Shown here in pieces: positions 4,408 through 32,770 of a stretch of 64,000 nucleotides of DNA; the first letter of the stretch is position 1; every line of letters starts with the position of its first letter. A model generated the notes under the pieces. The model saw nothing but the letters and a program-made list of their open reading frames with translations, made no database searches and was not told where the DNA came from. The position numbers and the translations under genes are program-made. The stretch comes from Paramoeba atlantica (Eukaryota; Protista; Discosea): assembly GCA_977017575.1 (NCBI GenBank), contig CDRNVI010000043.1:682001-746000 (forward strand). The letters run 5' to 3'.

Positions 4408-4439
4408 ATGTCCAGCGGCCGACGACGGCGGCGTCTTCC

Positions 4440-4472
<33 letters not shown>

Positions 4473-5580
4473 TTTCTCTTTGAAAATGGAGAGACGGGCG
4501 AGACGTGATCTCCTTTACCCCCCATTATGTTCCCTCTACCTTATATCCCATACCGTAAACTTATAATAGCTATATTAATTATACTTTTTTTTTTCTTCAA
4601 GTTTCCAATGTTTTTGTTTTTAATGTCAAATTCTAGAGGCCCATGTTTTGTGAATCGTCATTAGATAAATAATTTCTCAGCTGAGAGAATATAATCGACC
4701 CATTTAACTCCTGCAGGCACAGAGAAAATTCGTTCAGTGTTCGGACCCTATCAAGTCCGCTGCAGTCCGCCAACGTATGCAACAAGTGCCGGAGCCCGTG
4801 ATGCATAGCACCACCGGAGAGGACTGGGAGGCATACGAAACGCTCTTGAGGTATCATCCCGGAAGCCACGTATGTGCTGTGCTTGCGCGTAATGGCCTCT
4901 CTCATCAGGGTACCGCTACGTTTCCGTGCATTAGTGGGCGCCAGCTCGTGAATTATTGTTAGGTCATAAAAGATTTCCCCAGTTGCCCAATGTATTACAA
5001 TGTCAGGTCCTGACCGATGGAGGCTCGCATTTCTACAAACTTTTTGATGATCAGTTTTTCGCCATTGTGGGAACGATTCCCCGCATGTAGAGCATTTAAA
5101 AGAAGTAAACTGTCGAGGTTCCCTTTCGCATGGCACACCCGCCTTCATGCACAGTTCATAGATAATACGCACCAGATTATTATGTTTCATTGTTGTATTA
5201 TTTCCGGAACACTGGACGCATCCAGCTATGTGCGAAAAGGCTGATGAAGAATCCAGAAGGGTGCGACATCCTGGGCATTGCAGACTTTCGGGAATACGAG
5301 GGTGGCTTAGACCAAGACGTGGCATCAAAGCTAATGTGAAGAATTTGGAAGGCACTAACTTTGCCGTCGAATGAAGCCACGCGGAGTTCCCTTTTTCACT
5401 TGCTGCTCTCAGCACTGGTGCAACTTACTTCGGCTAGGGGGGACCTTCGATGAGTACTCATCGTAAGTTGTAGACTTTCGATGAGTCTCACGGAAAGTTG
5501 TAGACTTTCGATGAGTACTCATCGAAGGTGTTTTTGACTTTTTCACTTTTTCGTATTTTACTAAATTTTTGCGAAGGCTC

Positions 5581-6428: not shown

Positions 6429-7981
6429 AAGATTATTGTACGTGTGCTTCTCTCTAGATTCGTGGGAAGCAATTTGCGAAGCCCAACTACCTTGATAAAA
6501 AATTTTAGTACCAATTCGTGGGAAGCAATTGGCGAAGCCCAACTACCTTGATAACAAATTTTAGTACCCATTTTGGCCGCGCGGGGGCCCCCGCGTGAGC
6601 GGGGGTGCGCGCGGCCGCGAAACGGCGAGGGCCCGCGTGAGCGGGCCTGAGCCGTACCCCGCCTAGGATTCCCCTGTGCGTCGTTAGTGGGAAGCAATTT
6701 GCGAAGCTCATTTTCGCGAAGCTCACTGAATTTCGTAGTTTTCGCTGCGCAGGCGTTGTCAACTTATAGTGAAGTGTTATATAGCGAAGTGTAGGATACT
6801 GAACGCACGGAAAATGAAAATCAAAAAAAATTCTTGGGTGTTCCACAAAAGTCCTTGACTTATGCAAAAGTCCTTGACCTCCACCGTAAATTTCCGTTCG
6901 TTGAGTACTCAACGAACGTACCCCCAACCCAAAATCTCTATTAGAGTCGCTCAAAAACGCTTCGATGAGTACTCATCGAAGCTCCCCCCTACCCCAATTT
7001 TCGGGTCCTTACTCAACGATTCTTTAATGGCTCTGTTAAGCTTTGCTTCAGTTACAAATTCATCGTGGGGAGGGGTTATCTGATCTTCATTTCCCACCGG
7101 CGATGGAGACGTGAGACTGGGTGCTCGAACTGAATAGGAATTAAGTCGTTCAAGAGCACTGTGGCTTGATGCTTCATACGCCGATTTTCGCAAGAGATCA
7201 GTGGGCGTTAACCCCAATCCTCCGCTCTTCACAGGTAGACGCGCCCAAGCAATTTGCTTTGGTGTCATCGATCCAAACCATGCAGTAAGAACTTCTTGCA
7301 CTTGCTTGTCAAAAGATTTTGCCATTTCAAAAGTTTCTTCTGGTCGATGGACCCTTATATGGTATCGATGTCGTACATTAACACATCGCGACAGGAGGAG
7401 AAGCGAAACGTTGTTTGCTCCCATGTCACAAAGCCGCCGAAAAATAGTTAGATGCTTTTCAAGCTTGGCAAGAAGCAGCTCACTGACTCTGTCTGCTTCC
7501 CCTACGTAGGCTCCTAATGTTTTGACTGCCTTTTCCGCTATCTGAACGCCTTCATTCGCTAGACTTTCGGGTAGGCGAATATTGTTCAGACCGCTAAACC
7601 ATACACACTTTTGAGGGGCAAGGCAGATTTCTTTGCTTAGAAGAAGTTCTTTGAGGCGAACATAGGCAGCTGCAACAAGATCTTCCTCAGTTGACGCAAT
7701 ATTGATATCATCAACATAAGCGTATATATGTAGCATGGGAAATTCTTGTGCAATTGTCTCCAGTTTTGGCTGAAGAAAGGAGCAGAAGTATAGTGTCGAC
7801 AACGGCGACCCTTGGCGAACTCCAGCCGAACTTTCAACTGTTGAAAACAGTTCCCCGTTCTTTCCGTAAAAGAGGAGTTCAGACGCTGCCCCATATTCGG
7901 CAACAAATAGTCGCTGAAAAGGCCGAAGGGCGCTAAAAGCAAAAATTGCTTTTGCAATCTTTTTTTTTTTGAATTTTTTTT

Positions 7982-8145
7982 GCAATTAATAAGGGGGGAG
8001 AAGTATGAATCGCGGCATTGCCTCTATAATTTGACCCAGTAGACGAACCAAGTACATAGTAGGTCCATTAGGGGGGTATATGAATTTAAAACAAGCAATC
8101 AAATTAGCAATTCTTTTCATTTCCACAGAAGTATATTTTCTTGAA
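7982..8145 (-). mobile_element. 164-nt 3'-end stub of an A-type sister subfamily, with its own poly(A)
   Basis: Diverged copy of the A1 3' terminus (8165-8290), flanked by T-runs at 7974-7981 and 8146-8164. Confidence 0.8.
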
Positions 8146-8389
8146 TTTTTTTTTTTTTTTTTTTGCGATTAATAAGGGGGGAGAAGTATGAAACGCGGCA
8201 TTGCCTCTATATTACCCAATACATGAACCATGAAGGTCCATTGGGGGGGGTATATGATTTGTAAACAAGCAATCAAATTAGCAATTTCACATGTTGTAGC
8301 CCAAAACTAGTAATTCAACCTGCCTTAAGTTATTTATGATTCTGATAACAATAATAATAAAAAAGGAAGCAATCCACGCCCAATCCATT

Positions 8390-8620
8390 CGCGCGTTCCG
8401 GACCGGGTCTTTCGACCTCACCACGGCCTGACTTGTGGACCCTTCCCTTGTTATATGGGAGGGCGCAGGCGCGGGCCTGTGTCGACAGCGACACGGTCGC
8501 GGAACAGGAAGCTGGTCGACGGGGAGGAGATTCACTACCCGTGTACTACCTCACTTGGGGTACCTAGCCCTCGGCGAGCTAGGCGTGAGCATAGACTCTG
8601 TCGACTCGACCAGCTTCCAG
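8390..8620. ncRNA. Conserved structured RNA element in the A1 3'UTR (function unknown)
   Basis: Several helices with compensatory changes relative to 47325-47560 and 46850-47035. Confidence 0.65.
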
Positions 8621-8716
8621 ATCAGTTGTTTCCGAGGGCGCTAACGTGGGCCTGTGCCGACAACGGTGTGGTTAGGAAACGATTATCCCACGAGGGCTAC
8701 TTACTCCGTTACCAAG

Positions 8717-11700
8717 CTATTGCTCGATCAGCGGAGTGGGAAGGTCGTCTACCGGCATTCTTGATATCATCATACGTGCCTGGCGACGCATCAGCGTTAT
8801 GTTCAAGTCTGTGACGAGCTGTAGCGTAGCTGCTCCGTCACTGAGAATGCCGTTGGACGCTTTGGCCCGACGTTCTCCTACTTTCCGAAGTACTGCTAAG
8901 GCACTAGAGCTCCAAGAGCCGTAGCTCTCTACGACCATTGCTGTGAAGTCGCTTCCCGCCGACTCAGATTCACGGCGCTGTCGAGCTTTCTGGTCGGAGG
9001 CGTAGTGCTCAGCGAAAGATCCCGCGGCCACCCAGCTAGCATTTCGGACTGTGTCCGTGTATTTTGATTGCTGGGCGTGAGTGACCGCGAAGTCAAGCAC
9101 TATAGGTTTTCCGAGGAAGAGGCTCGGCATGAAGACGTCCCCCGGTCTGGTCAAGGCACCCCCTGGGCCCCTATTCCCGAGGCTTTTCTCGCGCTGGGGT
9201 GCTAGGTGGGCCTGGCTGCAGGTGGCAGCAAACTGATCGACTAACGAGTGGTGTCGCCGGATGATACCTTCCCCATGCTTACACGTGAGAGCATGGTCTC
9301 CGTGTATGTCAAGGGGGAGCGTGCAGTTCTCCCTGGGGCATTTTGATTCTTCCCCGTAGACTGGTACCCCCAACCACCAGCGGGACAAGGTACGGAATTC
9401 TGTTGGGGTGAAGGCGTGACCAGTGTCTTTGGATGGCGTTACGAAAGCCCAGCTATTGGCCCCTTTCCCGCTCTGGGAGACCCAACGTGCGCGAGTCCTG
9501 GCGTCAGCCTTTTCATAAGCTCGCGAAAATTCCGTAGCCGAAATCGCGTGGCTTATGTCCCTTTGGCGGGGGATACCCTTTTTCGCCCAGTACGGCAGCT
9601 TCGCGTCAAAGCAATCCTCCGTTGCATACAATGGGCATGACGTAGGGGGGAGATCATCGGGTGACAAGGGGGGGCGATCGTGTGGAAGGGAAGGGGGATT
9701 CGCAGATGAAGTAGGATCATGGGTATCCGGCTGGCGTGGGCGCTTTGCGGGGCGATGCCTCGGAGGAAATTCTTCGCATTTGTGGTGCGGGATAGTGCAC
9801 ACACGGCCACTTGAGTTGAGAAGCTTGGTGCCAACCTTCGCGTTTATGTCGTCAATAGATGATAGAAAGCCTTCTACTTCGGATGGATCCCAAGAGTCCA
9901 TGTCTGCTGCAAAAGCAACCGAGGAAACGTAGGCTGAGGTTGCGTGAAAGGATGCTGACCGTAACCCGAATCCTCCGTGTTTTTTCAGGCGCTGAATTTG
10001 GGACCGTGCAGAGGGAGGCAAGGGGCATAAACATGACTCTACCGCGTGCATGAGAAAATCATCCAGACGCTCGCATAAAAGTGTAAGTGATTGTGGTGGG
10101 GTCGTGCGGAGAGCGTGGACCATTTTGCAGAACCCGGCGCATTGCCGAATAAGCGCCATTGAAACCTGTGGGTCTTTGATTCTAGTTATAGCTTCTAACG
10201 CCGTTTCTGCTGGTTCAATGGCGTGCGTTGTCAGGTATTCGGAGCAATACTCTGGGGATCCAATCGGACTTCCTAGAACGCTAAAGTCGCCACGTACGTT
10301 GATTTTGGTGTCCGGTATGTCGGGAAACAAATTTGTCACGTTAGCCGAGGCAGGGGAGGTAATGATTTCACACTTCGACATGTTCAAGTGCAAGCCCCAG
10401 CGAGGGCCTACCCTGGCGATCGTGTCCAGTGCATTTCTGGTGTCTTGGGCCTTGCCTATGAGAACCCCGTCGTCAAGGTACCATAATTGTAGGTCCAAGT
10501 CGGCCTGGTGATTGATTTCGTTTGCTAATTCCAGGGCGACCAGGGAGAAGAAAAGAGGTCCGAGGGGGTACCCTTGTTGGACACCTTCGTCCGATAGGAG
10601 CGTGTGGGTTCGGTAAGTCAATGCACTAGTGGTGGTATAGCACCAGCTTGCCCATGGGAATAATTCTGGGAAGTGCTCGCTTACAAGCTTCAGGAAGGCG
10701 GTTCTGCTAACGTTGTTAAAGGCGTTTCTGAGGTCTACTTTGCAAAGAACAAAGTCAGGGTTATCAGTGTGGATGGCCATGGCTTGTCGACAAGTGTGGA
10801 TTATGCGTTCAGCTCCGACTGGTGTCGCCACTCCGAACTGTAGCCCTGCGAATATGCCGCTTGCCTTGGCTTTAACTACGTTGCACGCAGTTTTGCTGAC
10901 CAATCGACGAATAGTTTCCCCCGCAGCTATGGGTCGGACGTCGTTTTCGCCCTTTTCTAAGGCGCAAAGTCTGGCTCCGGCGAAATACGGTTGAACCTCT
11001 AGAGGGGCTTTACCGGCTAGAAGGTGATTTACGAGGTTTGTAATAGCTTTGAGAGGTTTCGTAGTGTTGTCTACCTGCGCTAGGAGTGCCACTTGTAGGT
11101 GTTCTGGGCGTAGGCCCATGGTTCCGGCGGAGGAGCCTCGGTGAAAGCTTTTGATGGTTTTCGCGACTGTCGCTTCATCTACCTGTAAGGGCGCTGTTGG
11201 TGGGGGGGTGTAATCGATGGCGTCGCTGTCTGAAAGGCGGCACGGGTGTTTGTTCTGAAGCTTGATATACGTTTCTTCGTCGTCAGGAGCCATTGGGTCA
11301 GCCGTGAGTGCTGCCATTCCTCTTGAGTACTCGCCTTGTCGAACCAGCAATTCTGACCGGATGGCAGCTTTTTCCTCCTCATCGTGAACTATGTTAGGGG
11401 TTGCGGATTGCTTTTTGAGGGCGTTGTTTACTGTATCATTCCACAAGGGTACGTAATCTTGCGCCAGCCATCGGTTCATGCACTTTTCGACGAATGATGC
11501 GTATGTTGTGTGATTCTTGCGTCCTCCTCGGTGCGGAGCTGGTAGGAGACACTTCGGGAGCATAGCGAATAACGTCCACGCGGCGGGGGAGTTTTCCTTG
11601 ACTGCGTTTTCGGCCGTTTTTGTTAAGATTTCTCCCCAAAGATGACGGCATCGGGCGGGGACGTCTTTGCAAGTGCTCAATTGTGTCTGAGAAATAGAGG

Positions 11701-12589
11701 CCAACGAGGGAAGCTCGGGTTGATGCATCTGAGTTGTGGGGGGGTGGCTTTCGTCGCTTGGGTGTGACATGTGTGATGGGCTTTGAGGGGTTGTCATCTT
11801 TCCCTTGCAGGACTGTGGGTGTGTTTCCCTTTTATTGACATCGTAAGAGCGCCCGCATGCAGCACACAGGAATCTACCTTCTGTAGCCCACCAGGCGGCA
11901 GGGATGCTGCTACCGTGACGACAGGCGACGTGGTTATAAAACGCTTGCCACGATACCCCGTGCGCCGGGCTCCGCCAAGTGCATCCCATCGCCGGGCATT
12001 CTCGGAATTCTTCTCTGTTTTGTGTAACTTCGGTGGCTGAGTCCTTGGCCTCAGCTAGGAGAGGTGAGGGAGGGTTTTTCTCTGTCGCCGGTATTCGTTT
12101 AGAATGCCTCGTGTCTGTCTTCGTGGGTCCTTTCGAGGGAGAAACGTTGTGTAGCAGACGGGGAGAGACGTCCTGTACTACGGCATTAAGCTTCAGTGTT
12201 TTGTCGGGGGTCCGAGATGCAGGTGCGTTCTCATGAGTTGTGCTCTGCCGTCTTACCCCACAGTGTTGCATTTCCTCGTTTTCTGCCTCAGTATGGCCCG
12301 TGTCTGGAGTTTCCCTCTCCTGTGCAATTTGGCGTGCGTGATCCATCCATTCCGCGGGAATATCCATGGGGATCGGCGTGGTATAAAGTTGCTCGTTGTA
12401 TGTACTTGCAGTGGAGATCAAGTGTTTGTTCCCCTCAAACTGGTCCCAACTGCCGAGTCGGTGGGAACGCTCTTCATCGGTGAAAGTGCCTTCGCTGAGC
12501 TTACCTTCGTTTGTGTTAGTCAATATGTGGGGTGAAGGTGGATTTTTGTCTAGGCTTGCGCGAGATCGAAGACTTTGATCGCTTTTCAT
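8717..12589 (-). CDS. A1 polyprotein (~1290 aa): LsmAD-like segment, Zn fingers, RT, CCHC, RLE nuclease
   Basis: CPAMGC..HVACRH and CAAC; RPIAAGE, VDLRNAFN, GVQQGYPLGP (D>Y vs QGDP in copies C and E), WYLDDG; CPRENC..H..C; RPGD..DFAV..K. The ORF-track start at 12724 only reads through poly(A) and SL. Confidence 0.88.
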   Translation of the reverse strand: MKSDQSLRSRASLDKNPPSPHILTNTNEGKLSEGTFTDEERSHRLGSWDQFEGNKHLISTASTYNEQLYTTPIPMDIPAEWMDHARQIAQERETPDTGHTEAENEEMQHCGVRRQSTTHENAPASRTPDKTLKLNAVVQDVSPRLLHNVSPSKGPTKTDTRHSKRIPATEKNPPSPLLAEAKDSATEVTQNREEFRECPAMGCTWRSPAHGVSWQAFYNHVACRHGSSIPAAWWATEGRFLCAACGRSYDVNKRETHPQSCKGKMTTPQSPSHMSHPSDESHPPTTQMHQPELPSLASISQTQLSTCKDVPARCRHLWGEILTKTAENAVKENSPAAWTLFAMLPKCLLPAPHRGGRKNHTTYASFVEKCMNRWLAQDYVPLWNDTVNNALKKQSATPNIVHDEEEKAAIRSELLVRQGEYSRGMAALTADPMAPDDEETYIKLQNKHPCRLSDSDAIDYTPPPTAPLQVDEATVAKTIKSFHRGSSAGTMGLRPEHLQVALLAQVDNTTKPLKAITNLVNHLLAGKAPLEVQPYFAGARLCALEKGENDVRPIAAGETIRRLVSKTACNVVKAKASGIFAGLQFGVATPVGAERIIHTCRQAMAIHTDNPDFVLCKVDLRNAFNNVSRTAFLKLVSEHFPELFPWASWCYTTTSALTYRTHTLLSDEGVQQGYPLGPLFFSLVALELANEINHQADLDLQLWYLDDGVLIGKAQDTRNALDTIARVGPRWGLHLNMSKCEIITSPASANVTNLFPDIPDTKINVRGDFSVLGSPIGSPEYCSEYLTTHAIEPAETALEAITRIKDPQVSMALIRQCAGFCKMVHALRTTPPQSLTLLCERLDDFLMHAVESCLCPLPPSARSQIQRLKKHGGFGLRSASFHATSAYVSSVAFAADMDSWDPSEVEGFLSSIDDINAKVGTKLLNSSGRVCTIPHHKCEEFPPRHRPAKRPRQPDTHDPTSSANPPSLPHDRPPLSPDDLPPTSCPLYATEDCFDAKLPYWAKKGIPRQRDISHAISATEFSRAYEKADARTRARWVSQSGKGANSWAFVTPSKDTGHAFTPTEFRTLSRWWLGVPVYGEESKCPRENCTLPLDIHGDHALTCKHGEGIIRRHHSLVDQFAATCSQAHLAPQREKSLGNRGPGGALTRPGDVFMPSLFLGKPIVLDFAVTHAQQSKYTDTVRNASWVAAGSFAEHYASDQKARQRRESESAGSDFTAMVVESYGSWSSSALAVLRKVGERRAKASNGILSDGAATLQLVTDLNITLMRRQARMMISRMPVDDLPTPLIEQ

Positions 12590-12639
12590 GGGGAAGGACG
12601 CTAATCCCCGGGGAGTAACTAAAGAAAGGAAAGATAATT

Positions 12640-12677
12640 CAACAAGGTACAGAAACTGTATCTTTATCGTTAAAGTT
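12640..12677 (-). other. Spliced-leader-like 38-mer AACTTTAACGATAAAGATACAGTTTCTGTACCTTGTTG
   Basis: Starts AACT, contains the kinetoplastid/diplonemid SL core CAGTTTCTGTAC and ends TTG. The same sequence heads unrelated 5'UTRs at 5942-5974, 22376-22413 and 42026-42059. Confidence 0.8.
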
Positions 12678-12736
12678 TTTTTTTTTTTTTTTTTTTGGAC
12701 CATCGCAACCAGAATCTGGCTCATAAGAAATCTTAA

Positions 12737-15700
12737 TTTTTTTTTTTTTTCTTTTCTTTATTTTTTTGAAACTATCCGTAGAAACCAATTTGAACAAACT
12801 AATAATACTATAACATTCACTGTCGTTTTTTTTTCCGTTCCTTTAGATATTATGTATATAATAATACATATAGGCATTGAAAAAAACGAAACTATGTTGA
12901 TACATTTGGCTCAAATGCTGTACCTGCTGCTGCCTTCCGGGGATAAGTGGTTCCGCAACTGGGCGTACACTTCCGTCCCATTCAGTTCCTGAAGTAGGAG
13001 CTTGAACTCCATTTCAGTTGCTCGACGATTTAAGAGTGCCGCGTCGGATAGGACATGCAACAGAGATCTCGTATTTTGATGAAGAGAGCCGCAGGACAGC
13101 ACTGGGATGCACTGAAATGCGAAGTCGGGAATTTTTCCGGATGTCACATATGTATCCCGTTTCCGCTTGATTGCATCTGTAAGAAGCTGGGAGCAAGATT
13201 TCGCTTGATTGGAGTTCGATAGCTCGTGCACCACAGTTAGATCATAAAATATTTCCCCGGTTGACCAATATATCACCAAATCAGGCCCTGAGCGAAACAG
13301 CTGACGTCCGGCACATGTTTTGTCATGAATCATTTTGTTGCTTGGAAACACTTTATTCTTGCAAATTCCGCATTGCCAAGTCGAAAAAGATCGCGGTTCT
13401 TTCTCGCATTGTATACCGGCCTTTTGTGCCAAATCGAAGATATACTTAACCAGCCGATTGTGCTTCATTGTGGCATTAAGCCCTGTACATTGGACGCATC
13501 CGGGGATGTGCTGCAAAGCTGTTTTGTTGTCGAGTAACATACGACAGCCGGGGTACAGCAGCGATTTCGGGAGTCGAGGATGAGGCATCCCAAGGCGTGT
13601 CATGATTGCAATCTGAAATGCACGCGTGGGTACAAATTTAGCATTAGACTGTAACCAGTCATAGCTTCCTTTCCGTGTGGTGGCATTTAATATTGTGGCT
13701 AGCTTGGGATCGTGATCCTTTAAAGCCTCGTATGCTTTCTGGTGCAATTGCGCGGCTGTTGTTACTTCATCGATTGGGGCGACCACTGCTGTTTGACTCA
13801 TTCCATTATCCATGATAGCGGATACGTTACTCACATTGCCCGCCCGAGCAGAAATTGAGTTTTTGCGCTCTAGAGCTAGGTAACGAGAAGTTTCGTATGA
13901 CGCCGCACGAATACTATGACATGATGTCAGACCGAGGCCTCCTTTCTTTAGCGGCAGCCGAGCCAATTCGATTTGCTCTTTGGTCATTTCTCCCAACCAC
14001 TGGTGCAGCACTTTTTCGACGTTGTTGTCGAAACTGAGAGAGACCACGTCGGTTAACGTTGGCTCGTGCACTCTTATGGCGTATTGATGCCTCACATTCA
14101 TGCTTTTGGAAAGTAGCAAAAGTGAGACATTGTTGGCGCCCATAAGTTTTAATCGGCGAAAGGCTTCGGTATTCCTGACAAGCTGCTGAAACAAACCCGA
14201 CTTTACAGATTCATCTTCTCCAAGGTGTGCCCCAAGGATCTTTATAGAATCGTACGCAGCCTTGACCCCTTCATTTGCAAGCTGTTCTGGAATCGGGATT
14301 TTTTCCTGTCCACCGAACCACACGCATTTTCCAGGAGCAAGTTCAATGTTGTGAGCATTCACCATTTCTTGGAGCCTTACAAATGCTTTGGCCAATGATT
14401 GTGAGTTTTTCGAAGCCATGTTCACGTCATCAATAAATGCATATATTTCGATGTCGGGAAACTCTTGTTTCAGAATCTCCAATAGTGGCTGCAGGAAGGC
14501 GCAGTAGTATAGAGATGCCAGCGGGGAACCTTGCCGCAAACCACATGTGCTGGGAATGACTCCGAATAGCGTTCCATCGGATCCGTAATACAGTAGCTCT
14601 GAGGGTTGGCCGTATTCAGCGTGAAAGATCCGTTGAAACGGGCGTAGTGTACCACAAGCAAATACGTGTTTGGCAATATCCGCCCTATTCGGGGAGTTGA
14701 AGGCGTTTTTGGCGTCAATGGAAAGAATGACGTGTCCAGACTTAAAACGCTCATGCAGTCTATGAACGATTTTTTCGCATCCTGCCTTTGACGAAACGCC
14801 GTGTTGCAGTGGTGCAAAAAGAGGGCCCAAAGTGTGTTCGTAGCGCTGGAGCAATATAACGCCGGCAAGCTTCATAAATATCTCGCCCATTGCCACTGGT
14901 CTGACTCCTCCGTTGGATTTAGGAATGGCTACGAGCCGTGCTCGGTTTAATCGAAACAAAACGCTGTGATCCACGAATCCGTTGATTAGATCCGATTTCA
15001 TATGGGCAAGATTAGTGCATGAGATCTCATCATCGAGCATGAGTTGCACAATCCCGTCTGTCATTCCAGTTGGGCCAGGGTTTACGCCTTTTGCGAGTCG
15101 CTTCCCTGCTTTCCGTAGCTCCTCCGTCATTATCCCGCTAATTATCGGCGCATCCTCCGGCAAAGAAATTTCGTATTGTCTTTGCGGATGTAAGGCGGCA
15201 AGCTTGTCAAGGGTCTCTTCATCCGTTAGTTGCTTTGGTGTAAAGGTCTGATCCAAGACCTTGGCCGCCTTGGAAGTACATCCATCCAATACTAGCCTTG
15301 TCGCTCGTTTGATGGCTCGTGTATCGCTCAGTGTCTCCTCTTTTCGCTCACCGTCATCGGGCTCCCGTAACGGGCGCCGTCTTCGCCTTTTTCCACTGTT
15401 TTCTCGAACAGTCGCTAGGGATAACTTAATGGCTGATAGCAAACGGTGCCATATTTTTGTTCTTTGCGTGTGATCGGAATTTATATACTCCTGGACGATG
15501 TTCCTCAGCACCACGACAACACACGGAGCGAGGTCAGGGCTTATTGAACGTAGCGTGGGTATTGGTAACAAATCCACTGATGAATCATCTTTGGCTTTTT
15601 CTGGAAAGTTCATCTGATGATTCTCCAGAAACGCATCCCTTTGCACAGTAGTATCGATCGCTGGCGGCGCTTGATGCCACGCTAGTTTATAGATCCGTAC

Positions 15701-17586
15701 GTCCTCTTGTGGAGGTAAAACCCCGGAAAATTGTTCCCCAACTTTGTGACCAACAACGCCCCGATACGAGATAGATAACTTACCAAATCCTCCACGCTTA
15801 CTATGTGTTCGAGTGACTTTGCCTATTGAGATGTTAAGCGCACCTTGTTTGTTAAATGTCCAGGCCACTGTACACATTGCGCCCGGTTTGATTTGCTTCG
15901 AATGCGTCCAAATCTCATCCGGCGAGGCCGGAAATTGTGACTCGGGCGTTACATTCTTCATCAGGTCAAAGGATTTGTTCTCCTCTGTGCTTGGGTCGAT
16001 TCCGATAAACATGATCGTTGAATTTTTCTCGTTCTGTGACTTCGTTGCATTTGGCTCCCGCTCGGGTAATTCCGCATCGATTTTGGGACTTGATGGAGAC
16101 CCCAACTGAGAGAGAAGCTGATCACGTTGGTTCGTTTTTTTCATGGGAGTTTCGGGAGTGTTGCACTCAAAAAACTGACGTGGCTCATCTGACGGGGAAG
16201 ACGGCTCTTCAGACAAAACATCAAAATTGTGAACGTCGTGCACGTAACCATTACCGATCCATCTGTATCCTTCAAATCGAGGGTCTTTGGGATCTGGATG
16301 CATCTCGATGTTGGTTTCATTGGCGTCATTTGCTACCGTCGGCGGAGTATTCGTGTTCACTTGAGAATTCCCGTGATGTGATTTATGACATGTAACCGCT
16401 GTTCCATTTGTCGATTCCGCTGTCACGTTCTGGATCCTTATCCGAGTTGAATCATCCTCGTTTCGCAGTTTCACTGGTGATGGACTGTGGCTGCGATTAG
16501 GAAGTTGAGGCAGCTGAATGCTTTGCTGACTGCTTGCAATCGATGTCAAAGTTGAGACAGCTGCGCCGCACGTTTTCGCTGCCATGCCGCACGATTTCGT
16601 GATAATGGAACTCCATCCATTTACTTGATACAGAGTTTTGCTAATAGGAGAAGATTGGACTATGCGCGGTGCTACCGAGGCGTTCTTTCGCTGAGCTTCT
16701 CGTTTTTCTTTCTGCATGCGTGTCCACAAATCGTTGAACGTTTGCCTCCGAATGTTTGACTTTGAAATTGTAATTTTCATGGTTTTCTGAGACCTGATGT
16801 TTGGTGATTCTGATGCGACGTTTGGCGTAACGTTTGTCGACGAGAGCCATGGTGGAAATTCTGAATCTTTTCGTGAAACCGCAACTGGTATTGTTCTTTG
16901 TGGCGTGACCATCTCGTGAGCCTTGCGGTGCGAGAATCCTTTAGGCGGTTGAGGCGTCTCCGTTGAAGCACCTTGTGGGGGAGAGGGGCTCAGTCGGATT
17001 AGCTGTGGTGAGGCGAGCGGGGGTGGCATAGGGCGCGGTAGAGCTGAGGGGGCGGAGGAGTTCAGAAGCGGCGGAGAATGGAGCGGTCGACGATTACGTG
17101 CGGCTCTCGTTGGAAACCGTGAAGGGAAGTGCGCCGCAAGGGTATCATAGAAGGAGGGTTTCTTTGCCATAATTTTGTCAGGTTGACTTGGTGGTGAGCT
17201 CGGCTGCGGTAGTGTTGTTGGCTGCGGTGGCGGTAATGGTGGCGGCTGTGGAAGCGTTCCCGGTGACAGCGGTGTCGTTGGCAATGGCGGTGGCTGTCGC
17301 ATGGTTCGGGACGGCGATGGCGTCTTTGGTGATTCCATTCGTTCTAGTCGCATCTCTGTACTCGGATGTGTGGAATTCAAGGACGGGGACGGCGTCTGCG
17401 GGGGATGCGGGGGGGATTTCTGCGGGGGCGGCGCACCTAGCGGAGAGTTCGTGGTTAGTCCTGTTCTCTTTTTGCGCCGGGTGACAGGCAGAGGCAAAAT
17501 CTCAGGAGCTACTCCCGATTCTTTCGCCTTGGAGCGGGTGACCACTCCCATAGAAATGTAGAAAGTAAGAGGTAATAATTCAACAA
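12737..17586 (-). mobile_element. Full-length B-type CRE-clade retrotransposon B1
   Basis: SL remnant TTGTTG (17581-17586), 29-nt UTR, single ORF, poly(A) at 12737-12750. Confidence 0.92.
12911..17551 (-). CDS. B1 polyprotein, 1546 aa (Pro-rich N-terminus, beta-barrel-like domain, RT, Zn knuckle, RLE)
   Basis: GVRPVAMGE, IDAKNAFN, GLRQGSPLA, AFIDD, YPGC (CPGC in B2), CGIC, SGPDL..YDLTV..K. Confidence 0.92.
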   Translation of the reverse strand: MGVVTRSKAKESGVAPEILPLPVTRRKKRTGLTTNSPLGAPPPQKSPPHPPQTPSPSLNSTHPSTEMRLERMESPKTPSPSRTMRQPPPLPTTPLSPGTLPQPPPLPPPQPTTLPQPSSPPSQPDKIMAKKPSFYDTLAAHFPSRFPTRAARNRRPLHSPPLLNSSAPSALPRPMPPPLASPQLIRLSPSPPQGASTETPQPPKGFSHRKAHEMVTPQRTIPVAVSRKDSEFPPWLSSTNVTPNVASESPNIRSQKTMKITISKSNIRRQTFNDLWTRMQKEKREAQRKNASVAPRIVQSSPISKTLYQVNGWSSIITKSCGMAAKTCGAAVSTLTSIASSQQSIQLPQLPNRSHSPSPVKLRNEDDSTRIRIQNVTAESTNGTAVTCHKSHHGNSQVNTNTPPTVANDANETNIEMHPDPKDPRFEGYRWIGNGYVHDVHNFDVLSEEPSSPSDEPRQFFECNTPETPMKKTNQRDQLLSQLGSPSSPKIDAELPEREPNATKSQNEKNSTIMFIGIDPSTEENKSFDLMKNVTPESQFPASPDEIWTHSKQIKPGAMCTVAWTFNKQGALNISIGKVTRTHSKRGGFGKLSISYRGVVGHKVGEQFSGVLPPQEDVRIYKLAWHQAPPAIDTTVQRDAFLENHQMNFPEKAKDDSSVDLLPIPTLRSISPDLAPCVVVVLRNIVQEYINSDHTQRTKIWHRLLSAIKLSLATVRENSGKRRRRRPLREPDDGERKEETLSDTRAIKRATRLVLDGCTSKAAKVLDQTFTPKQLTDEETLDKLAALHPQRQYEISLPEDAPIISGIMTEELRKAGKRLAKGVNPGPTGMTDGIVQLMLDDEISCTNLAHMKSDLINGFVDHSVLFRLNRARLVAIPKSNGGVRPVAMGEIFMKLAGVILLQRYEHTLGPLFAPLQHGVSSKAGCEKIVHRLHERFKSGHVILSIDAKNAFNSPNRADIAKHVFACGTLRPFQRIFHAEYGQPSELLYYGSDGTLFGVIPSTCGLRQGSPLASLYYCAFLQPLLEILKQEFPDIEIYAFIDDVNMASKNSQSLAKAFVRLQEMVNAHNIELAPGKCVWFGGQEKIPIPEQLANEGVKAAYDSIKILGAHLGEDESVKSGLFQQLVRNTEAFRRLKLMGANNVSLLLLSKSMNVRHQYAIRVHEPTLTDVVSLSFDNNVEKVLHQWLGEMTKEQIELARLPLKKGGLGLTSCHSIRAASYETSRYLALERKNSISARAGNVSNVSAIMDNGMSQTAVVAPIDEVTTAAQLHQKAYEALKDHDPKLATILNATTRKGSYDWLQSNAKFVPTRAFQIAIMTRLGMPHPRLPKSLLYPGCRMLLDNKTALQHIPGCVQCTGLNATMKHNRLVKYIFDLAQKAGIQCEKEPRSFSTWQCGICKNKVFPSNKMIHDKTCAGRQLFRSGPDLVIYWSTGEIFYDLTVVHELSNSNQAKSCSQLLTDAIKRKRDTYVTSGKIPDFAFQCIPVLSCGSLHQNTRSLLHVLSDAALLNRRATEMEFKLLLQELNGTEVYAQLRNHLSPEGSSRYSI

Positions 17587-17590
17587 TCTC

Positions 17591-19060
17591 TTTGCAATCT
17601 CGTCGCGTGAAGGGCTATTAAAAGCGTTCTTCATATCCAACGAGAGGATAGCACACCCTTCCATATATCGTCGATTGAGTTCGTGAACAATAGTCTCGCA
17701 GCCAGCGCGACTCATTACCCCATGCTGCATCGGCAGGAAAAGCTTTTCAAATTTATGTTCGTTACGCAGAAGAAGGATTAGTCCAGCCAACTTGAGAAAA
17801 ATTTCTCCCATTGCCACCGGTCGAACGGCTTGAGCTGTTTTAGGGAGTGCAACTAAGCGTGCTCTCCGCAGTCTGCGCATTACATCCTTGGAGAGCATTC
17901 CGTTAATTAAATCGCACATCATGTGGCTTAGACTCGTGCAACAGATCTCATCGTCCAAGAGCAGACGAATGATGGCCTCTGTGGTACCGGATGGACCTGG
18001 GGCGGCGCCTTTTGCGAGTCTCTTTCCTGCTTCTCGGAGTTCATGGGGCGGGATACATGCTACCTTCGGGGCGTCGGTGGGAAGCTCAAAAGAAATCGGT
18101 AAAGATGGGTGTAGTTTTTGTAATTGAGACAATTTTTCTTCGTCCCCTAATGATGTTTCGGTGATGTCTTGATCTAACACGCGCGTCGCTTTCTTAATCG
18201 CTCCTTCCAAAACCAGTCGTGTCGCTTTTTTGACTGCTCTCAGATCTTTAGCCTTTTGCTCCACTTCACTGTTTCCTGCGTTCGTCTCCTGAGTTTGAAT
18301 TGGGCGGCGACGACGCTTTTTTCCAATGAGATGGCGCACTGTAGCTAACGAATGTTTCATTGCCGACATGGTTCTGTGCCAGATTTGATTTCGTTGGTCG
18401 TAAGAAGAATCTGCGTAATCCCGCATTATGTCACGATAGATAGAGACAACACAGGGCACAAACTCTGAACTGACAGTCCGCATGGTTGGCATTGGATCGA
18501 AATCCAAGTCTGCTTCCGTATGAGAAAATCCTTGATTACTGGGAATTCCTTTAGCGTCCACATCAATTCTGCTTTTTGAATCCTTTCGATGTAGCCATTG
18601 TATTGAATAAACTCTCACATTAGAATTGGGAGGAATGAACCCACGAAATTGCTCGCCGCATTTGTACCCTTCTATACCTTCATACTGGAGAGACATCCGT
18701 CCGATTCCGGCACGCTTCTTAACCGACTTAACCACCCCTTTCGATATATTCAGCTGCGAGGAATCGCTGAAGCACCATGCCATCAAGCACGAGTCCCCTT
18801 GTTTCGCCGTTTTTGATGAATCCCAGATGGTATCCGGTGCCAGTGGAAACTGCTCCGTTGGGTTTATCGACTTATTCAACTTCTCTATCATCTCGGCCTC
18901 CTTGGCAACTTCTATGACAGACTCTGTTTCAGCAGGAAGTTCAAAGTTCGGCATCGTGATATTGTTTTCGTCAACTACCTCGTGCAGTGTCGTAGACCCG
19001 TCAACCCTTCCCGTGCTCAATAGGGTGTCCTCAGGAGTTAAACAGTCGGCGTATGTCTGA
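17591..19060 (-). pseudogene. 5' half of element H (5'-truncated), ending at ...NSPSRDEIAK
   Basis: ORF 17509..19020 is homologous to B1. The breakpoint AGATTGCAAA (17591-17600) is duplicated at 7951-7960, where the RT continues. Confidence 0.85.
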
Positions 19061-19064
19061 CATT

Positions 19065-19444
19065 CGACATCTGCGTCTTCCGTTTGCTTTCCGGATAGTC
19101 GCTAACGAGTATTTCATTGCAGACAAGGTCCGGTGCCATATGCGATTGCGCTGGGGGTATTGACATTCCGCGTAGTCACGTACAATATCACGATAGATGG
19201 CAATCACACTCGGTATGAATTCATAACACTCCACAAAGAGCGGCCATTGCACGGGCACTGCAGCAAAACAGCGCTTTCAAACCATTCATGCGGATGTTCT
19301 ACTGCGAATACGGCGACCCCTCGGACTTGCTTTTCTTTGCGAACAACCGCCTCCACACTACGATAAAGAGCACGTCCGGGGTACGGCAAGGCTCTGCGCT
19401 TTCCTCTCTTTACTTTTGTGCACTACTACAAGGAGCGTTGGTGG
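19065..19444. pseudogene. Truncated duplicate of the 5'-inverted element I
   Basis: Matches 39124-39503 and is cut at the duplication junction (19444). Confidence 0.8.
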
Positions 19445-22413: not shown

Positions 22414-22905
22414 TTTTTTTTTTTTATATCGGATCCAATCTCCATGCGAAGCGATCATATACAGAAGTAACAAAAATGAAATTCAACTAGTAGTAGATAT
22501 TTCTGTTGGTGTTTCAATACTACATAAGAAGTGTACAAAAGCTATCACTATAAATTCCTTTTCGAAAGAATCGTAGATTGATATATCTTTTTGACTAGCC
22601 TATATTGCGTTAGTAGTTTTCCGAAAACGAAAGCGTCCTAAAATATATATATATCTTTCGGAAAACCCCAACAGAAATACTCTGATTTTTTTATGCTATA
22701 AAAAATCCATTTATACTAAATTATCTTTTTTATATCGGATCCAATCTCCATGCGAAGCGATCATATACAGAAGTAACAAAAATGAAATTCAACTAGTAGT
22801 AGATATTTCTGTTGGTGTTTCAATACTACATAAGAAGTGTACAAAAGCTATCACTATAAATTCCTTTTCGAAAGAATCGTAGATTGATATATCTTTTTGA
22901 CTAGC

Positions 22906-25900
22906 CTATATTGCGTTAGTAGTTTTCCGAAAACGAAAGCGTTCAACGCCACGTCTGTCGCCACCTTGAGAAGGGATGTCATCCAGCCTAATGCACCTGG
23001 AGGGCTTATCTGCTAGGTTTCTATCCGAGGGACACCACATAACTTCTGTAATGTACCCCTTCACTTTGAACCAAAAAAGCTTCTTAAGCCAACTCATCAC
23101 TTTTGGTGGGCCTGCCCGCCAACGCGTTAGCCATGAAACCACATTCTTGTTGTCGGAAATTAAAGTGCTATTCCGTAAGTTTTTTTGTCTAACTAAATTC
23201 ATCCCCTGCTCCGCGGCATACAATTCTTTATATGCAATCGATGAATCTTTCAACCAAAAGGGAAACCTTCCAGCCTTATATTTTAGGTCGCCGTGCTCTG
23301 TCCAAGCCAAACCCCACCCTTGATCAGAGGCATCCACAAAAATTTCAAAAGAAGCGACGCTTTTTTCGTTTACTTTTCGAGGGCGATTCTTCTCTACTGT
23401 GTCAATAAGCTCTACAAGATCTGCAATGAACGCCTTTGACATAAAACAGGGTTTGTCCCATAAAGATTGATCGAATGCTATCCTACGGGATCGACCCCGG
23501 ACCCACAACATGACGCCTAAGAACTGACATTGCTGGATACCTAGAATTCGTGTGGCCCAGAAAAGAGTACCCAGTACCTTCCAAATTAGGCGATGAGAGG
23601 GAAAGAAACGACGTCGCTGCAAACATTTAAATGCCTCGCGTAGTGCAGCTAACTTTTGAAGAAAAAGTACGGGGAGTGAAAGAGTTTTCTTCTGGAGATC
23701 CACGTGTACTCCCAATATTGTGCCGCTCACCGTTGGTTGTGTAGTTACCAATATTTCGGCACCAGCACGGTCGGCTCGCTGCTGAATGTTTTGCAAATCC
23801 CCCGTGAGAGTTTCCGTATCATTCGCAAAACTATAGCCGTTATCTATAAATGTCAAAATTCGCTGTTTTTCTATTCCCTGGTACAAGACATTTGTCGCGG
23901 CATGGCCTATTTTCACCGACGCCTGCCAACCCATCGGGAGCGTAGCCCATCCGTATGTTCGCCCTTTGACACGGACTGCGAAGTAAGGGAGCAGCTTTGG
24001 CGGCAAGACGAATTGATGGTACCAACTCTTGCCATCCGTTTCGCAAAAGAAATTGTATTTGGCTACCAAGGTCTCTATATCTTTCAAAGATGCAAGGTCT
24101 AGAGGGCCTGGTACCATCTCTTGCATAGAGTTTAGTGGAATCGCGTTTAAGATGACACGCATAGATTGCTTCTTCACTTTGGGTATCAAAAATGATGTCA
24201 TCCATACTCTTACTGCTCGTCGTGGAATACGCTTCAAAATACCTGCTTGGAGCATCTCGCGGAGCACGGGTCCTAATTTTTTTGATTCGCCCCGATAACG
24301 CAGATCACGGAACTTTTTCAACAATTGCATAAACTTTTCCGGATTAATAATATAATCAAACAGTTCTGCCTCTTCACTCATATCTTCTTCCTTAGCCATT
24401 CTGACTAACTCGGTCAGATTGATTCTGGCGGACGAGACGGCGTCCAGCGGCCAATCTCGTTCACAGGGACGGGTTCTCTCTCCACGCTGGATTCGTCGAT
24501 TGTCAGGGAAGTGTATATTGACGTAGGTGGGGTAGGCGACGAATTCATACAGTATTTCCCACGGAGAGGTGCTCGCACCGACAGGTGCGGCGACGCAGGC
24601 TCGCCCATTACGGTGCTGAGCCTCGTCTTCTTTAAGTGACGCGCGTTTAGCGCTGTCTGAACTTCGTACTGGTCCTCTAGCGATGTTCCCTCCCCCACTG
24701 CGTTCACGTAGTCCGCAAGTTCTTTCTCCATCGCTCGCTTCCTTTTTCTGGTTTGTAACGGGGCGGTTAAGTCGGCTTTCAGCGGGTCTACTAGGTATCT
24801 CGGGACCCGGGACTTCGGAGGACTTGCGTCCGTGATAGAACCCTTCGGAAGCATGTGAACTACTCCTCGAGAGAAATCTTTTCGACACCATGTGGGGTTT
24901 TCGCCTTCGCCCATTTCGCGTAGCACCTCGCGCTCTGTGGTCAGGTACGGATAAGGTAGCGTCTGTTGAGGGATATGCCGATGAGGAGTGTAATAAGGGG
25001 TGGGAAGGTGGTGAGAGTCGAATTTCTGAAGTCGAGAAACGGGAGTTCGTGGATGATCTTCGTCCATCGGGATGGGGGGTAGCATTGCTCCTGCCTCGCG
25101 TGGTTGTTGTTGTTGTTGTTGGAATGCCTCGAGTGGTGTGGGGAGGGATGGCGGGATTGATTCGCGAGGATCGGGAGTTTCTGAATGATCTTCCATCATC
25201 ACGGGGGTTAACAAAGGTTCTTCCTCGCGTGACGTGGGGAGGGACGGCGGGATCGTGTTTGTTGGCTCGGGAAACCGTGATTCGAGAGGTGTCTGCAGCC
25301 GATGACTCACGCCTGTTGGTACGGGGAGTATTGGTGGGTCTGTACGAGGGGTTCGGCTGGGGGAGAGCGGAGTGGAAATTACTCGTATGTTTTTTACACA
25401 GCTTGAAAAGCTTAGGCGTCTGGGGAGGCTCGCCCTCTGCAGGATTCCCCACCGATCTTTTGGTGTTGAGCAATTCGATTGAGTGACCACTCCCATCGTT
25501 TGATCGACGGATAGAATTGAGCTGGGTCCGTTCGTCGGTCTTACCTCTTTCCTCAATGACTCGGGAGTATTTTCCTGCTGTATTTGAATGCTTCCCGTCT
25601 CCACGATAGTTTCGAGCGGCAGGAGTGTCTCTTCGGCTGGTGTGAATCCTCTTTTCTCTGCCGACAGGGTAGTTCTTGGCTCGTCGAGATCTGGCTTTTC
25701 TTCTCTCCGGGATGTCGTGGCTTGATTGTGACAAATTTCCCGGGTCTGCGTCGTAGGATGCTCGAAAGGCACGGCTACGTATTGTCCTAGTTTTCGAGAC
25801 ACCTCTAATCCCGCTATCGCTCTTGGGTCTAGAAACGAGCCGAGATACGCCCGCAGGGAAGCTTCGGAAACGTGCCGAGTCAGTTGCTGTATCGCTACTG

Positions 25901-27099: not shown

Positions 27100-27647
27100 T
27101 AGCGGCCGTATTCTCGACCAAACTTATGTTTGTAACGAAGATAGTGCAAATTCTCAAACGCGGGCTCCACTGAAACCATCGAAAACGGACGTCCTGCTCG
27201 CGCGTGCAACCCGCAATCTTGGAGGTGTTTCGAGATCGTGTCGAGACTTTCTCTCAAACTTATGGCATCCCCCGCAACCGCACCAGGATCTTTTGAGTTT
27301 CCAAATTGTTTGCGAATTTCATGCTCCAATCGTCCAATTAAATTGTCCCGGTATAGATCACTGCAGAAATGTCGGTATTCCCATTCTTTTGGGCGGAAAA
27401 GCTTTTCGTGGGGGAGGTCATGGGCCGCAGGATCATACCCGCCCGGCGCCGACACACTCTTTGCTGCCATTCCCAGAGCTTCCCGAATTTGCGCGGATTG
27501 CCGCTCCACCGTAGCTTCCAACATACCGATGCGCTCTTGATCAATCTTCGTTGACGCCATGAGTTCCTCCATACGCTGCATCATTCTGGTATTATCCCCC
27601 AACTGCTGGATCACATCTCTCGGAGAGGGTGGCTGACCTTCGGCCAT
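26862..27647 (-). CDS. Gag-like ORF1 of VIPER-like 1 (261 aa; coiled coil, RGG-rich tail)
   Basis: First ORF after the 5' repeat, with heptad-like N-terminus and an RG-rich C-terminus. Gag assignment is by position. Confidence 0.7.
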   Translation of the reverse strand: MAEGQPPSPRDVIQQLGDNTRMMQRMEELMASTKIDQERIGMLEATVERQSAQIREALGMAAKSVSAPGGYDPAAHDLPHEKLFRPKEWEYRHFCSDLYRDNLIGRLEHEIRKQFGNSKDPGAVAGDAISLRESLDTISKHLQDCGLHARAGRPFSMVSVEPAFENLHYLRYKHKFGREYGRYWKETARSAPMDDQYTQAHEATMSYYQNMSIAQGAAMNAKNGGGRGYGERFRGPFRGVGRARGGRGMASRNGHNIAGSQ

Positions 27648-30600: not shown

Positions 30601-32770
30601 GTATTGGTAACAAATCCACTGATGAATCATCTTTGGCTTTTTCTGGAAAGTTCATCTGATGATTCTCCAGAAACGCATCCCTTTGCACAGTAGTATCGAT
30701 CGCTGGCGGCGCTTGATGCCACGCTAGTTTATAGATCCGTACGTCCTCTTGTGGAGGTAAAACCCCGGAAAATTGTTCCCCAACTTTGTGACCAACAACG
30801 CCCCGATACGAGATAGATAACTTACCAAATCCTCCACGCTTACTATGTGTTCGAGTGACTTTGCCTATTGAGATGTTAAGCGCACCTTGTTTGTTAAATG
30901 TCCAGGCCACTGTACACATTGCGCCCGGTTTGATTTGCTTCGAATGCGTCCAAATCTCATCCGGCGAGGCCGGAAATTGTGACTCGGGCGTTACATTCTT
31001 CATCAGGTCAAAGGATTTGTTCTCCTCTGTGCTTGGGTCGATTCCGATAAACATGATCGCTGAATTTTTCTCGTTCTGTGACTTCGTTGCATTTGGCTCC
31101 CGCTCGGGTAATTCCGCATCGATTTTGGGACTTGATGGAGACCCCAACTGAGAGAGAAGCTGATCACGTTGGTTCGTTTTTTTCATGGGAGTTTCGGGAG
31201 TGTTGCACTCAAAAAACTGACGTGGCTCATCTGACGGGGAAGACGGCTCTTCAGAAAAAACATCAAAATTGTGAACGTCGTGCACGTAACCATTACCGAT
31301 CCATCTGTATCCTTCAAATCGAGGGTCTTTGGGATCTGGATGCATCTCGATGTTGGTTTCATTGGCGTCATTTGCTACCGTCGGCGGAGTATTCGTGTTC
31401 ACTTGAGAATTCCCGTGATGTGATTTATGACATGTAACCGCTGTTCCATTTGTCGATTCCGCTGTCACGTTCTGGATCCTTATCCGAGTTGAATCATCCT
31501 CGTTTCGCAGTTTCACTGGTGATGGACTGTGGCTGCGATTAGGAAGTTGAGGCAGCTGAATGCTTTGCTGACTGCTTGCAATCGATGTCAAAGTTGAGAC
31601 AGCTGCGCCGCACGTTTTCGCTGCCATGCCGCACGATTTCGTGATAATGGAACTCCATCCATTTACTTGATACAGAGTTTTGCTAATAGGAGAAGATTGG
31701 ACTATGCGCGGTGCTACCGAGGCGTTCTTTCGCTGAGCTTCTCGTTTTTCTTTCTGCATGCGTGTCCACAAATCGTTGAACGTTTGCCTCCGAAATCCAC
31801 GGCGAGGGCATCCGGACATTAACATAATCAAATCACGAATATGATAAAGTAAAGAAGTATCTAATTGAAAACATAGCTTATGTTGAACGTCTACTTCTCG
31901 TTATGCTATGGTTCCTCTTATGATGCTAGTAGATTTCTCCTATTTCTGAATAACGCGCGCTGTATAAATATTCAAAAAGGGGCCCTGGTACCACACAATT
32001 AAACTCAGAATGTTGAAGAAAAGGGAATACTTTGTGAAGGGGCTTAGCCCCCCACGCTCCGCAGCCGTGGCTGGGGGTTGGTGGGTGGGCTTCGAAAACG
32101 TGTAAATAAACTTTGAAGAATAGCCTTCACACAACACAAAATCAACAAACAGAGCAATATTTCTACCAGAAACAATACATACATATTATCAATAATTTCA
32201 CTTGAAATGTAATCATATAAAAGCTTAAAATACAGCGCGTACAATGCCCGCCGGCCACGTAAGTAAATAGCCCTCGCCTAAATTTCTTACCGTAAACTTT
32301 TAGAAATCCACGGCGAGGGCATCCGGACATTAACATAATCAAATCACGAATATGATAAAGTAAAGAAGTATCTAATTGAAAACATAGCTTATGTTGAACG
32401 TCTACTTCTCGTTATGCTATGGTTCCTCTTATGATGCTAGTAGATTTCTCCTATTTCTGAATAACGCGCGCTGTATAAATATTCAAAAAGGGGCCCTGGT
32501 ACCACACAATTAAACTCAGAATGTTGAAGAAAAGGGAATACTTTGTGAAGGGGCTTAGCCCCCCACGCTCCGCAGCCGCCAACCCGCTCACTCGTAATGA
32601 ATTCCTTGTCACTGGTAACTAAAATCACTACCTGTATGAAGAATGCTCGAAAATTGACCAGACTTTCGTAGCGTCTCCAAAACCTAAACGAAACTATTTT
32701 TTTTTTTTTTTTTTTATTATTATTATTATTCTATATAAACTAAATTTCATATAAATACGGTTGAATCGAA

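Follow-up and report, generated by a model that had tools for sequence, protein, structure and literature searches.

Retrotransposons of the long interspersed nuclear element (LINE) type that carry a restriction-like endonuclease (RLE) are the textbook site-specific retrotransposons, with targets in rDNA, spliced leader (SL) genes, small nuclear RNA genes and microsatellites (PMC4640811, PMC12278014), and the CRE clade of kinetoplastids (SLACS, CZAR, CRE1, and CRE2) inserts at one fixed position inside the SL RNA genes (PMC12278014). L1 and Alu insert into the A-rich tracts of earlier Alus, a sense-oriented self-insertion at the A-rich linker in which the RNA's poly(A) stretch base-pairs with a poly(T) primer (PMC2836564). 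Template switching during LINE reverse transcription generates chimeric retrogenes, including U6-L1 in mammals and the bi- and tripartite WEIRD/Mg-SINE/MGL elements of Magnaporthe (PMC2104539), and dinoflagellates contain SL-tagged retrogenes (DinoSL relics) with a DNA-encoded SL at the 5′ end (PMC6050394). In the 64,000-nt window analyzed here, positions 682001–746000 of contig CDRNVI010000043.1 (C43) in the Paramoeba atlantica assembly GCA_977017575.1 (45.7 Mb in 248 contigs), a 9.6-kb chain of retroelement pieces separated by A-runs lies within the reverse transcriptase (RT) of another retroelement, H. This block is probably a nest of at least four separate insertions through target-primed reverse transcription (TPRT) of RLE-type LINEs, made with 10-bp staggered cuts, three of the four within an older A-tract or on its border.

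All elements of the chain lie on the minus strand; their sequences are given in that orientation and their coordinates on the plus strand. Element H, which matches the Pfam family RVT_1 (E = 6.7e-13), is split by a 10-bp direct repeat, AGATTGCAAA (tttgcaatct on the plus strand), present at 17591..17600 and again at 7951..7960. The 5′ half (17601..19444) is itself 5′-truncated, contains the N-terminal part of the RT and is 99–100% identical to other H copies; its open reading frame (ORF; 17509–19020) ends ...SPSRDEIAK, and the 3′ half (6990..7950), which holds the remaining RT, continues colinearly and in frame with AIFAFSALRPF. Further insertions cut H below ~6990. Eight other H copies (L014–L021) are uninterrupted and read ...CGCGACG AGATTGCAAA AGCAATTTTT..., with a single 10-mer between the same flanks, and the two halves are contiguous in all of them. 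Since intact copies hold one AGATTGCAAA and the halves join in frame, the insert is bounded by a true 10-bp target-site duplication (TSD), here TSD1. Both the split of H at this repeat and the colinearity of its protein halves had been proposed in a first-pass annotation of the window, and both are borne out.

Read from its 5′ end, the insert consists of GAGA and TTGTTG (a remnant of the SL, its last 6 nt) in front of B1, a series of A-runs, a 40-nt stub, A21, a complete SL joined to A1, A19, a 164-nt stub, and A8 TTC A10 ahead of the second copy of TSD1, so that the annotated succession of B1, poly(A), 40-nt stub, poly(A), SL-A1, poly(A), and 164-nt stub in one orientation agrees with the sequence. 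B1 (12835..17590) is an RLE-type element without long terminal repeats that has an intact ORF of 1546 aa; its 5′ end continues from the SL remnant with AATTATTACC, and its 3′ end reads ...CTAAAGGAACGG. B1 proper stops at ...GGAACGG followed by A9 (~12835/12826), which is the usual 3′ end of the B family (...CTAAAGGAACGG plus poly(A)) as seen at L087. Beyond this end, 12768..12834 holds the A9 tail, CGAC and a 54-nt internal piece (12821..12768) of Q, a 472-bp repeat whose copies at L084–L086 read ...GGTG AGTGAATG...GGATAGTTTC AAATTCAATTG; the piece in the window ends at ...GGATAGTTTC.

At the 5′ joint of A1, the extra letters TAAAGAAAAG and A14 (12737..12760) are present in both copies of a tandem duplication described below, and they are followed, in this copy only, by the 40-nt stub (12697..12736). 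The stub is an internal fragment of a B/H-like element, K: its one other copy in the genome, C27:273220–273259, lies inside the ORF of K, in the interior of the reading frame and not at the 3′ untranslated region (UTR) end of an RNA. In K, A5 stands before it and AA, a pyrimidine tract and AG come after it, which would be the context expected of an internal trans-splice/polyadenylation site; on this context the stub would represent the 3′ terminus of a K RNA that was polyadenylated prematurely, truncated at the A-run. A21, the full-length, SL-headed A1 and its A19 tail occupy 8146..12696, with the SL at 12675..12640, an ORF that extends to 8717 and the 3′ end ...TTAATCGC at 8165. The 164-nt stub comes from the 3′ end of A2, a very abundant family with 502 candidates; the terminal 159 nt of A2 (GAAAATATAC...TTAATTGC) and about 3 A of its own tail lie at 7979..8140 and match the A2 copies L075–L077 at 161/161 positions. 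Both stubs start where their source has an internal A-run, A5 in each case.

The TTC near the 3′ end of the chain, annotated with its poly(A) as a further chain member, belongs instead to two nested 10-bp target duplications. The left copy of TSD2, TTCAAAAAAA, at 12761..12770 comprises the last 3 nt of the Q piece and A7 of the B1 tail, and the right copy at 7964..7973 is followed by the last 3 A of that tail (7961–7963). TSD2 encloses TAAAGAAAAG-A14, the 40-nt stub, A21, SL-A1, A19, and the A2 stub, and it cannot be extended on either side, the maximal direct repeat being exactly 10 bp, as in TSD1. TSD3, AAAAATTCAA, at 8141..8150 and, overlapping the right copy of TSD2, at 7969..7978, encloses the A2 stub with its ~3 A and is of the same length again. 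The left TTC is not A2 sequence, since the consensus of seven A2 copies reads ...GAGAAAAAAGAAAAA / GAAAATATAC... with no TTC at the junction. TSD3 begins in an A-run, spans the boundary between run and flank and surrounds a sense-oriented insert, as does an A-tract-targeted LINE insertion, while in TSD1 and TSD2 the first letters are not part of an A-run. A template-switch chimera would have a single TSD about the entire insert and no duplications around its inner members, which is not the arrangement found.

Two other sources of TTC were considered and dropped. If A(n)TTCAA around the 164-nt stub were derived from A2, it would not be a TSD; the motif occurs only twice in the genome, the seven A2 copies lack TTC, and the second occurrence, on contig C44, lies at a change from ~9% to <1% divergence. 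If the right-hand TTC came from the AAATTCAA of Q itself, through polyadenylation of the B1 RNA after TTCAA, a 10-bp TSD made by A1 would have placed TTCAAATTCA on the left side, where it is absent.

From these sequences, repeats and family sources, we infer the following order of events and mode of pairing. A trans-spliced, polyadenylated B1 RNA with the read-through Q piece, ending ...GTTTC plus poly(A), would first have inserted into H and produced TSD1. A full-length, SL-capped A1 RNA would then have entered through a first nick just 5′ of the TTC at the start of the B1 tail, producing TSD2 and pushing a second TTC and A-run beyond A1, and a 5′-truncated A2 RNA would have inserted across the displaced TTC, producing TSD3. 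Tandem duplication of 9718–19444 would have followed, and then insertion of the prematurely polyadenylated K fragment into the A-run before A1 in one copy and integration of a VIPER-like element, Y, into the same A-run in the other. The nicked T-strand of an A:T tract may pair with the poly(A) of the incoming RNA, which would fix the sense orientation and let new tails add only ~3–4 A; the start of the stubs at A-runs of their sources would likewise fit pairing of a T-ended cDNA with the upstream A-tract.

Evidence for insertion into A-tails extends beyond the chain. Similar chains that had been annotated at 4408–4594, 41789–42004, and 59518–59741 are present. Among 88 pairs of neighboring A-runs, taken from the window and the fetched loci on the same strand and 15–6500 nt apart, 10 share at least 3 letters after both runs, compared with 2.5% of random pairs (p = 6e-5). 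Marked duplications of this kind surround A1 stubs with an A-run plus GACAG (L050) or an A-run plus GTT (L072), and a 31-nt stub at 41800 (window 41788–41841) with an A-run plus GCT; a BLAST search with the three stubs at 41800–41985 found no source in the DNA of the window and fetched loci. About 80 of 399 full SL heads (~20%) lie within 3 nt of at least 8 A, and around a quarter of the A-family tails are directly followed by the head or stub of another element. The expectation that TSDs within poly(A) would be invisible does not hold here, as they show whenever the 10-bp stagger passes the end of the A-run. The chain at 59518–59741 (minus strand) also contains A8-CAAAGAC twice in tandem before A18, which may be a target duplication without an insert.

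The first-pass annotation had offered two origins for the chain, of which insertion into existing poly(A) tails is upheld by TSD2, TSD3 and the excess of A-run pairs, and a single TPRT event with serial template jumping is not supported for the main joints, given the 10-bp repeats that the A1 block and the A2 stub have of their own. The latter, in which the RT would start at the nick in H and jump from RNA to RNA, landing on poly(A) tails, and would leave pieces of the same age inside a single TSD, is unlikely, though R2-type RTs do jump end to end in vitro (PMC8594491, PMC8857657). A single 10-bp TSD does enclose everything, and all pieces share one orientation and are 99–100% identical to their relatives, which makes their ages inseparable. 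Traces of switching exist as well, in the stubs that start at source A-runs, in partial SL repeats that precede several SL heads (L007, L010, L058), and in an element on contig C44. The sequence AAATTCAAGAAAATATAC occurs twice in the genome, in the window and at C44:62270, and the latter lies in an A2-like element (L074, C44:61600–62700, minus strand) whose last 161 nt and linker A7TTCAA match the joint in the window and whose upstream UTR comes from a ~9% divergent subfamily; compared with A2, the element diverges by ~9% over the 80 nt upstream of the A-run and by <1% downstream. This distribution of differences suggests that the C44 element is likely a chimera, formed when an RNA across the A19-TTCAA-A2 joint of the window underwent a template switch in the A-run. 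The L074 locus continues as another chain of A26, 18-mer repeats, A20, an A1 stub, A9, and an SL head.

Because of this chimera, the partial SL repeats and the extra A-rich letters before A1, the jumping alternative is not wholly baseless, but what it captures is template switching at A-runs as a genuine secondary process and not how the chain arose. To build the chain, the RT would need three separate starts at the 3′ end of B1 RNA, two of them broken off after precisely TTC, and a repeat length of 10 bp, equal to that of TSD1, is not predicted. Nor can serial jumping yield the duplications of A-run plus flank around inner members (L050, L072, 41788–41841), and the 40-nt stub differs between duplicate copies that are otherwise 99.8–100% identical. 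A jump of another kind is conceivable, if doubtful: on reaching the capped SL end, the RT of an RLE element may jump onto a poly(A) tail, perhaps that of the same closed-loop mRNA, and the resulting oligo(T) end of the cDNA would then anneal to the A-rich upstream end of the target. Such a cap-to-tail jump would be a dedicated way of attaching the 5′ end and would explain TAAAGAAAAG and ~A20 before A1, part of the ~20% of SL heads found directly next to A-runs, and likewise the partial SL repeats and the A-run chimeras.

A further proposal, that the chain or large parts of it were built elsewhere and arrived as one composite RNA, read through encoded A-tracts and polyadenylated further downstream by 3′ transduction, is decidedly improbable as an account of the whole. 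Composites of this type do occur. The combination of B, A9/10, CGAC, and Q is shared by the window and a B-family copy on contig C85 (with A10), so that the Q piece travels with the B element as in 3′ transduction. At C14:421393–435666, two loci 11 kb apart (L067 and L068) share an A-family 3′ end, A10 and the same 55-nt piece, an SL remnant with B-like 5′ UTR, and then diverge into two different sequences; it seems that this composite was moved or copied as one block. The C44 chimera, in turn, implies transcription across the A19-TTCAA-A2 joint. No other locus with the arrangement B1-tail-SL-A1 or A1-TTCAA-A2 was found in the genome, however, and the TTC and A repeated on either side of A1, and likewise of the A2 stub, would be left unexplained. 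All that a composite RNA accounts for is the Q piece, and the nested history already includes it.

The region 9718–19444 is repeated in tandem at 19454–39503 (minus strand; unit 9.7 kb) with 99.8–100% identity. The duplicate starts 10 bp after the end of the first copy, and the joint at 19444/19454 carries a 12-nt templated repeat, GCCGGATACCCA, and CCA microhomology. The second copy contains two VIPER-like elements, X (31794–36779) inside B1, and Y (22425–27777) at the joint between the B1 tail and SL-A1, where the first copy has the 40-nt stub; the stub is missing from the duplicate, as annotated. At this joint the first copy reads A14-stub-A21 and the second A12-Y-A14, with 6 of the last A belonging to Y (14 + 21 vs. 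12 + 8). The surplus of ~15 A in the first copy is what a 10-bp TSD made up of A alone and a short new tail would add, which fits insertion of the stub after the duplication. Whether the stub was inserted in one copy or deleted from the other, the same A-run before A1 took a further insertion, that of Y.

X and Y are ~5 kb each and encode RT/RNase H and a zinc-knuckle Gag, and no integrase was detected in either by Pfam. Both have split direct repeats (X: P...Q-P-Q; Y: leader + 29 nt ... B-A6-leader-B), on which their putative classification as recombinase-type elements rests. The repeat of Y ends in A6 and Y sits inside an A-run, and a recombinase-type element may thus also favor A-tracts. 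Within the second copy only, a 22-bp micro-insert, AATAATAATAATATAACAAAAG, with an 8-bp TSD, CGCTGGCT (37737–37759), looks like an abortive insertion, and at 39503/39504 the truncated 5′ end of H abuts an antisense RT element. An origin of the first copy as a retro-copy of the whole H composite, placed into its own source, was rejected, contig C43 having only one H 3′ half.

Four public runs hold the stretch as short-read Logan contigs that break at every poly(T), and none of them bridges a joint; one contig has a loose end at 7960 that runs on into H, and as it originates from other, empty H copies, it is uninformative for the assembly. A mis-join of near-identical repeats or of two haplotypes, with the chain or the duplicate not existing as written, is nevertheless very hard to credit: the families have hundreds of copies at 99–100% identity, no public read or contig spans any joint, and the duplicate begins 10 bp past the end of the first copy, but the joints carry specific features (three nested 10-bp repeats, single-source stubs, the 12-nt microduplication and CCA at 19444/19454, and the micro-insert with its 8-bp TSD) and the halves of H align exactly with intact copies.

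Several points weigh against the nested history. Its intermediate states find no support in the public short-read contigs. TSD2 and TSD3 are short, A-rich repeats of low complexity, and their weight falls on one 3-nt marker. TAAAGAAAAG and ~A20 in front of A1 are extras that TSD2 does not explain. A7TTCAAG occurs inside the A2-like 3′ UTR at C44:62270, and had the stub descended from this lineage, the left TTC would have come from RNA and TSD3 would no longer stand; we only infer the direction of descent between the window and C44. The 40-nt stub may have been lost from the second copy by slippage deletion between two A-runs, and the nested history does not account for the coincidence of the left end of the duplicated block with the exact 5′ end of the truncated H. 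A nest of separate insertions is still the probable origin of the chain.

The enzymes of the chain are consistent with this origin. RVT_1 is matched by B1 (E = 7.7e-22) and A1 (E = 2.7e-15), and the single long ORF with an RT domain is that of the R2 supergroup. No apurinic/apyrimidinic endonuclease (APE) domain (Exo_endo_phos) was detected in A1, B1, or H at E ≤ 0.01, and an ingi-like element of the same window does match. The C-terminal 267 residues of B1 have 212 relatives in a representative library, and an alignment of 37 sequences conserves C54 C57 H69 C73, C115 C118 H130 C134, G143-P-D145, D158, and K185, that is, two CCHC motifs and PD...D...K. In a Foldseek comparison of the AlphaFold model of this region (predicted local distance difference test score, pLDDT, 93.7) with the Protein Data Bank (PDB), the top seven matches are all R2 proteins (E 2.7e-5 to 2.2e-4, template modeling score, TM, ~0.55), followed by PD-(D/E)xK nucleases. 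On the predicted fold and the conserved motifs, B1 is an RLE-type LINE whose C-terminus, with a CCHC knuckle and a PD-(D/E)xK nuclease, folds like the linker, zinc knuckle and RLE of R2, as the annotation had it; a PDB sequence search gave matches only to the RT. A1 forms one row of the 37-sequence alignment, with 15% identity to B1, and a CCHC-like cluster and RPGD...LDFAVTH are seen by eye in its translation. Its relatives are many, in sponges, dinoflagellates and metagenomes. A weak match to LsmAD (ataxin-2/Pbp1; E = 3.4e-4), below the Pfam cut-off, also occurs in the N-terminal region of A1 (window 12317–12460).

The ingi-like LINE of the window is of APE type, with a 12-bp TSD, ACTTTGCACATG, and an (ATT)n tail, so that the 10-bp events would fit the RLE families and not trans-mobilization by this LINE. 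Inside the same 12-bp TSD lies a 4.5-kb array of an 18-mer, CCTTTCCTTATTGTAAGA (window 49618–54104), and short arrays of related 17–18-mers follow poly(A) tails or element ends at L088 (C27), L074 (C44), and L060.

No named CRE, SLACS, or CZAR proteins were found among the homologues, and the hallmark of the CRE clade, one fixed position in SL RNA genes, is not seen: the 3′ flanks of the A family are diverse, and B1 lies in the RT of H. The SL at A1 is complete and fused to the 5′ UTR, and no SL intron follows the tail. The SL of this genome is (A)CTTTAACGATAAAGATACAGTTTCTGTACCTTGTTG, which we take to be similar to kinetoplastid and diplonemid leaders; no Rfam family was matched in the window. 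The 3′ 20 nt of the SL occur 743 times genome-wide, and a 25-nt stretch reaching within 1–2 nt of its 5′ end 399 times. These copies are scattered through the genome, with many different downstream sequences, which means that DNA copies of trans-spliced RNAs abound in it. At L001–L004 (C1:8252–26549), SL heads recur every 5093 bp in a tandem array of SL-headed units that have the same 34-nt sequence, ACTTTTCTTATTTGTATTTCGCACGAATAAAAGT, on either side of the SL.

The window thus presents young, abundant RLE families in a kinetoplastid-like genome that are dispersed, copied from trans-spliced mRNAs, and pile up in the poly(A) tails of one another. Their behavior suggests that pairing of primer and tail, and not the class of nuclease, can be the source of a preference for A-tracts, which would explain the one-orientation transposon islands of the genome. 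The TTC marker records, as natural sequences rarely do, in which order nested insertions took place, and the traces of template switching at A-runs in vivo are comparable with the biochemistry of R2.

Among the described systems, A-tract insertion by L1 and Alu is like the chain in that new copies enter the A-tracts of older retrocopies in sense, the TSD starts in an A-run, head-to-tail pairs result, and part of the apparent tail of a new copy is target sequence. It differs in that the elements here have an R2-like RLE and no APE, a stagger of 10 bp instead of 15–16, and full-length copies with a trans-spliced leader. Template-switch chimeras likewise join several RNA-derived pieces in one orientation within one pair of direct repeats, a process that the C44 A2b/A2 chimera and the partial SL repeats resemble, but their parts are fused directly and the inner ones lack duplications, whereas here A-runs separate the parts and two inner parts have 10-bp repeats of their own. 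With the CRE clade the elements share a single ORF, an RLE, zinc-finger motifs, a poly(A) tail, a spliced-leader organism and a physical association with SL sequence; unlike CRE elements, they are dispersed between varied flanks, and a complete SL is fused to the 5′ UTR as in mature mRNA, with poly(A) or unique DNA upstream. As in DinoSL retrogenes, a DNA-encoded SL at the 5′ end marks copies of mature trans-spliced mRNA, although the tagged RNAs are here the retrotransposons themselves, in a kinetoplastid-like genome. In L1 3′ transduction the downstream flank of the source is carried along, and B1, like the composite on C85, carries such a flank (Q) past its encoded A9 tail; unlike in L1, read-through would be expected here as a result of polycistronic transcription in which splice signals further downstream would determine polyadenylation. 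The best reading of the locus is serial insertion of RLE-type LINEs into or beside poly(A) tails with a 10-bp stagger, together with 3′ transduction, as a variant of L1/Alu A-tract insertion that is distinct from template-switch chimeras and from the SL-gene-specific CRE elements.

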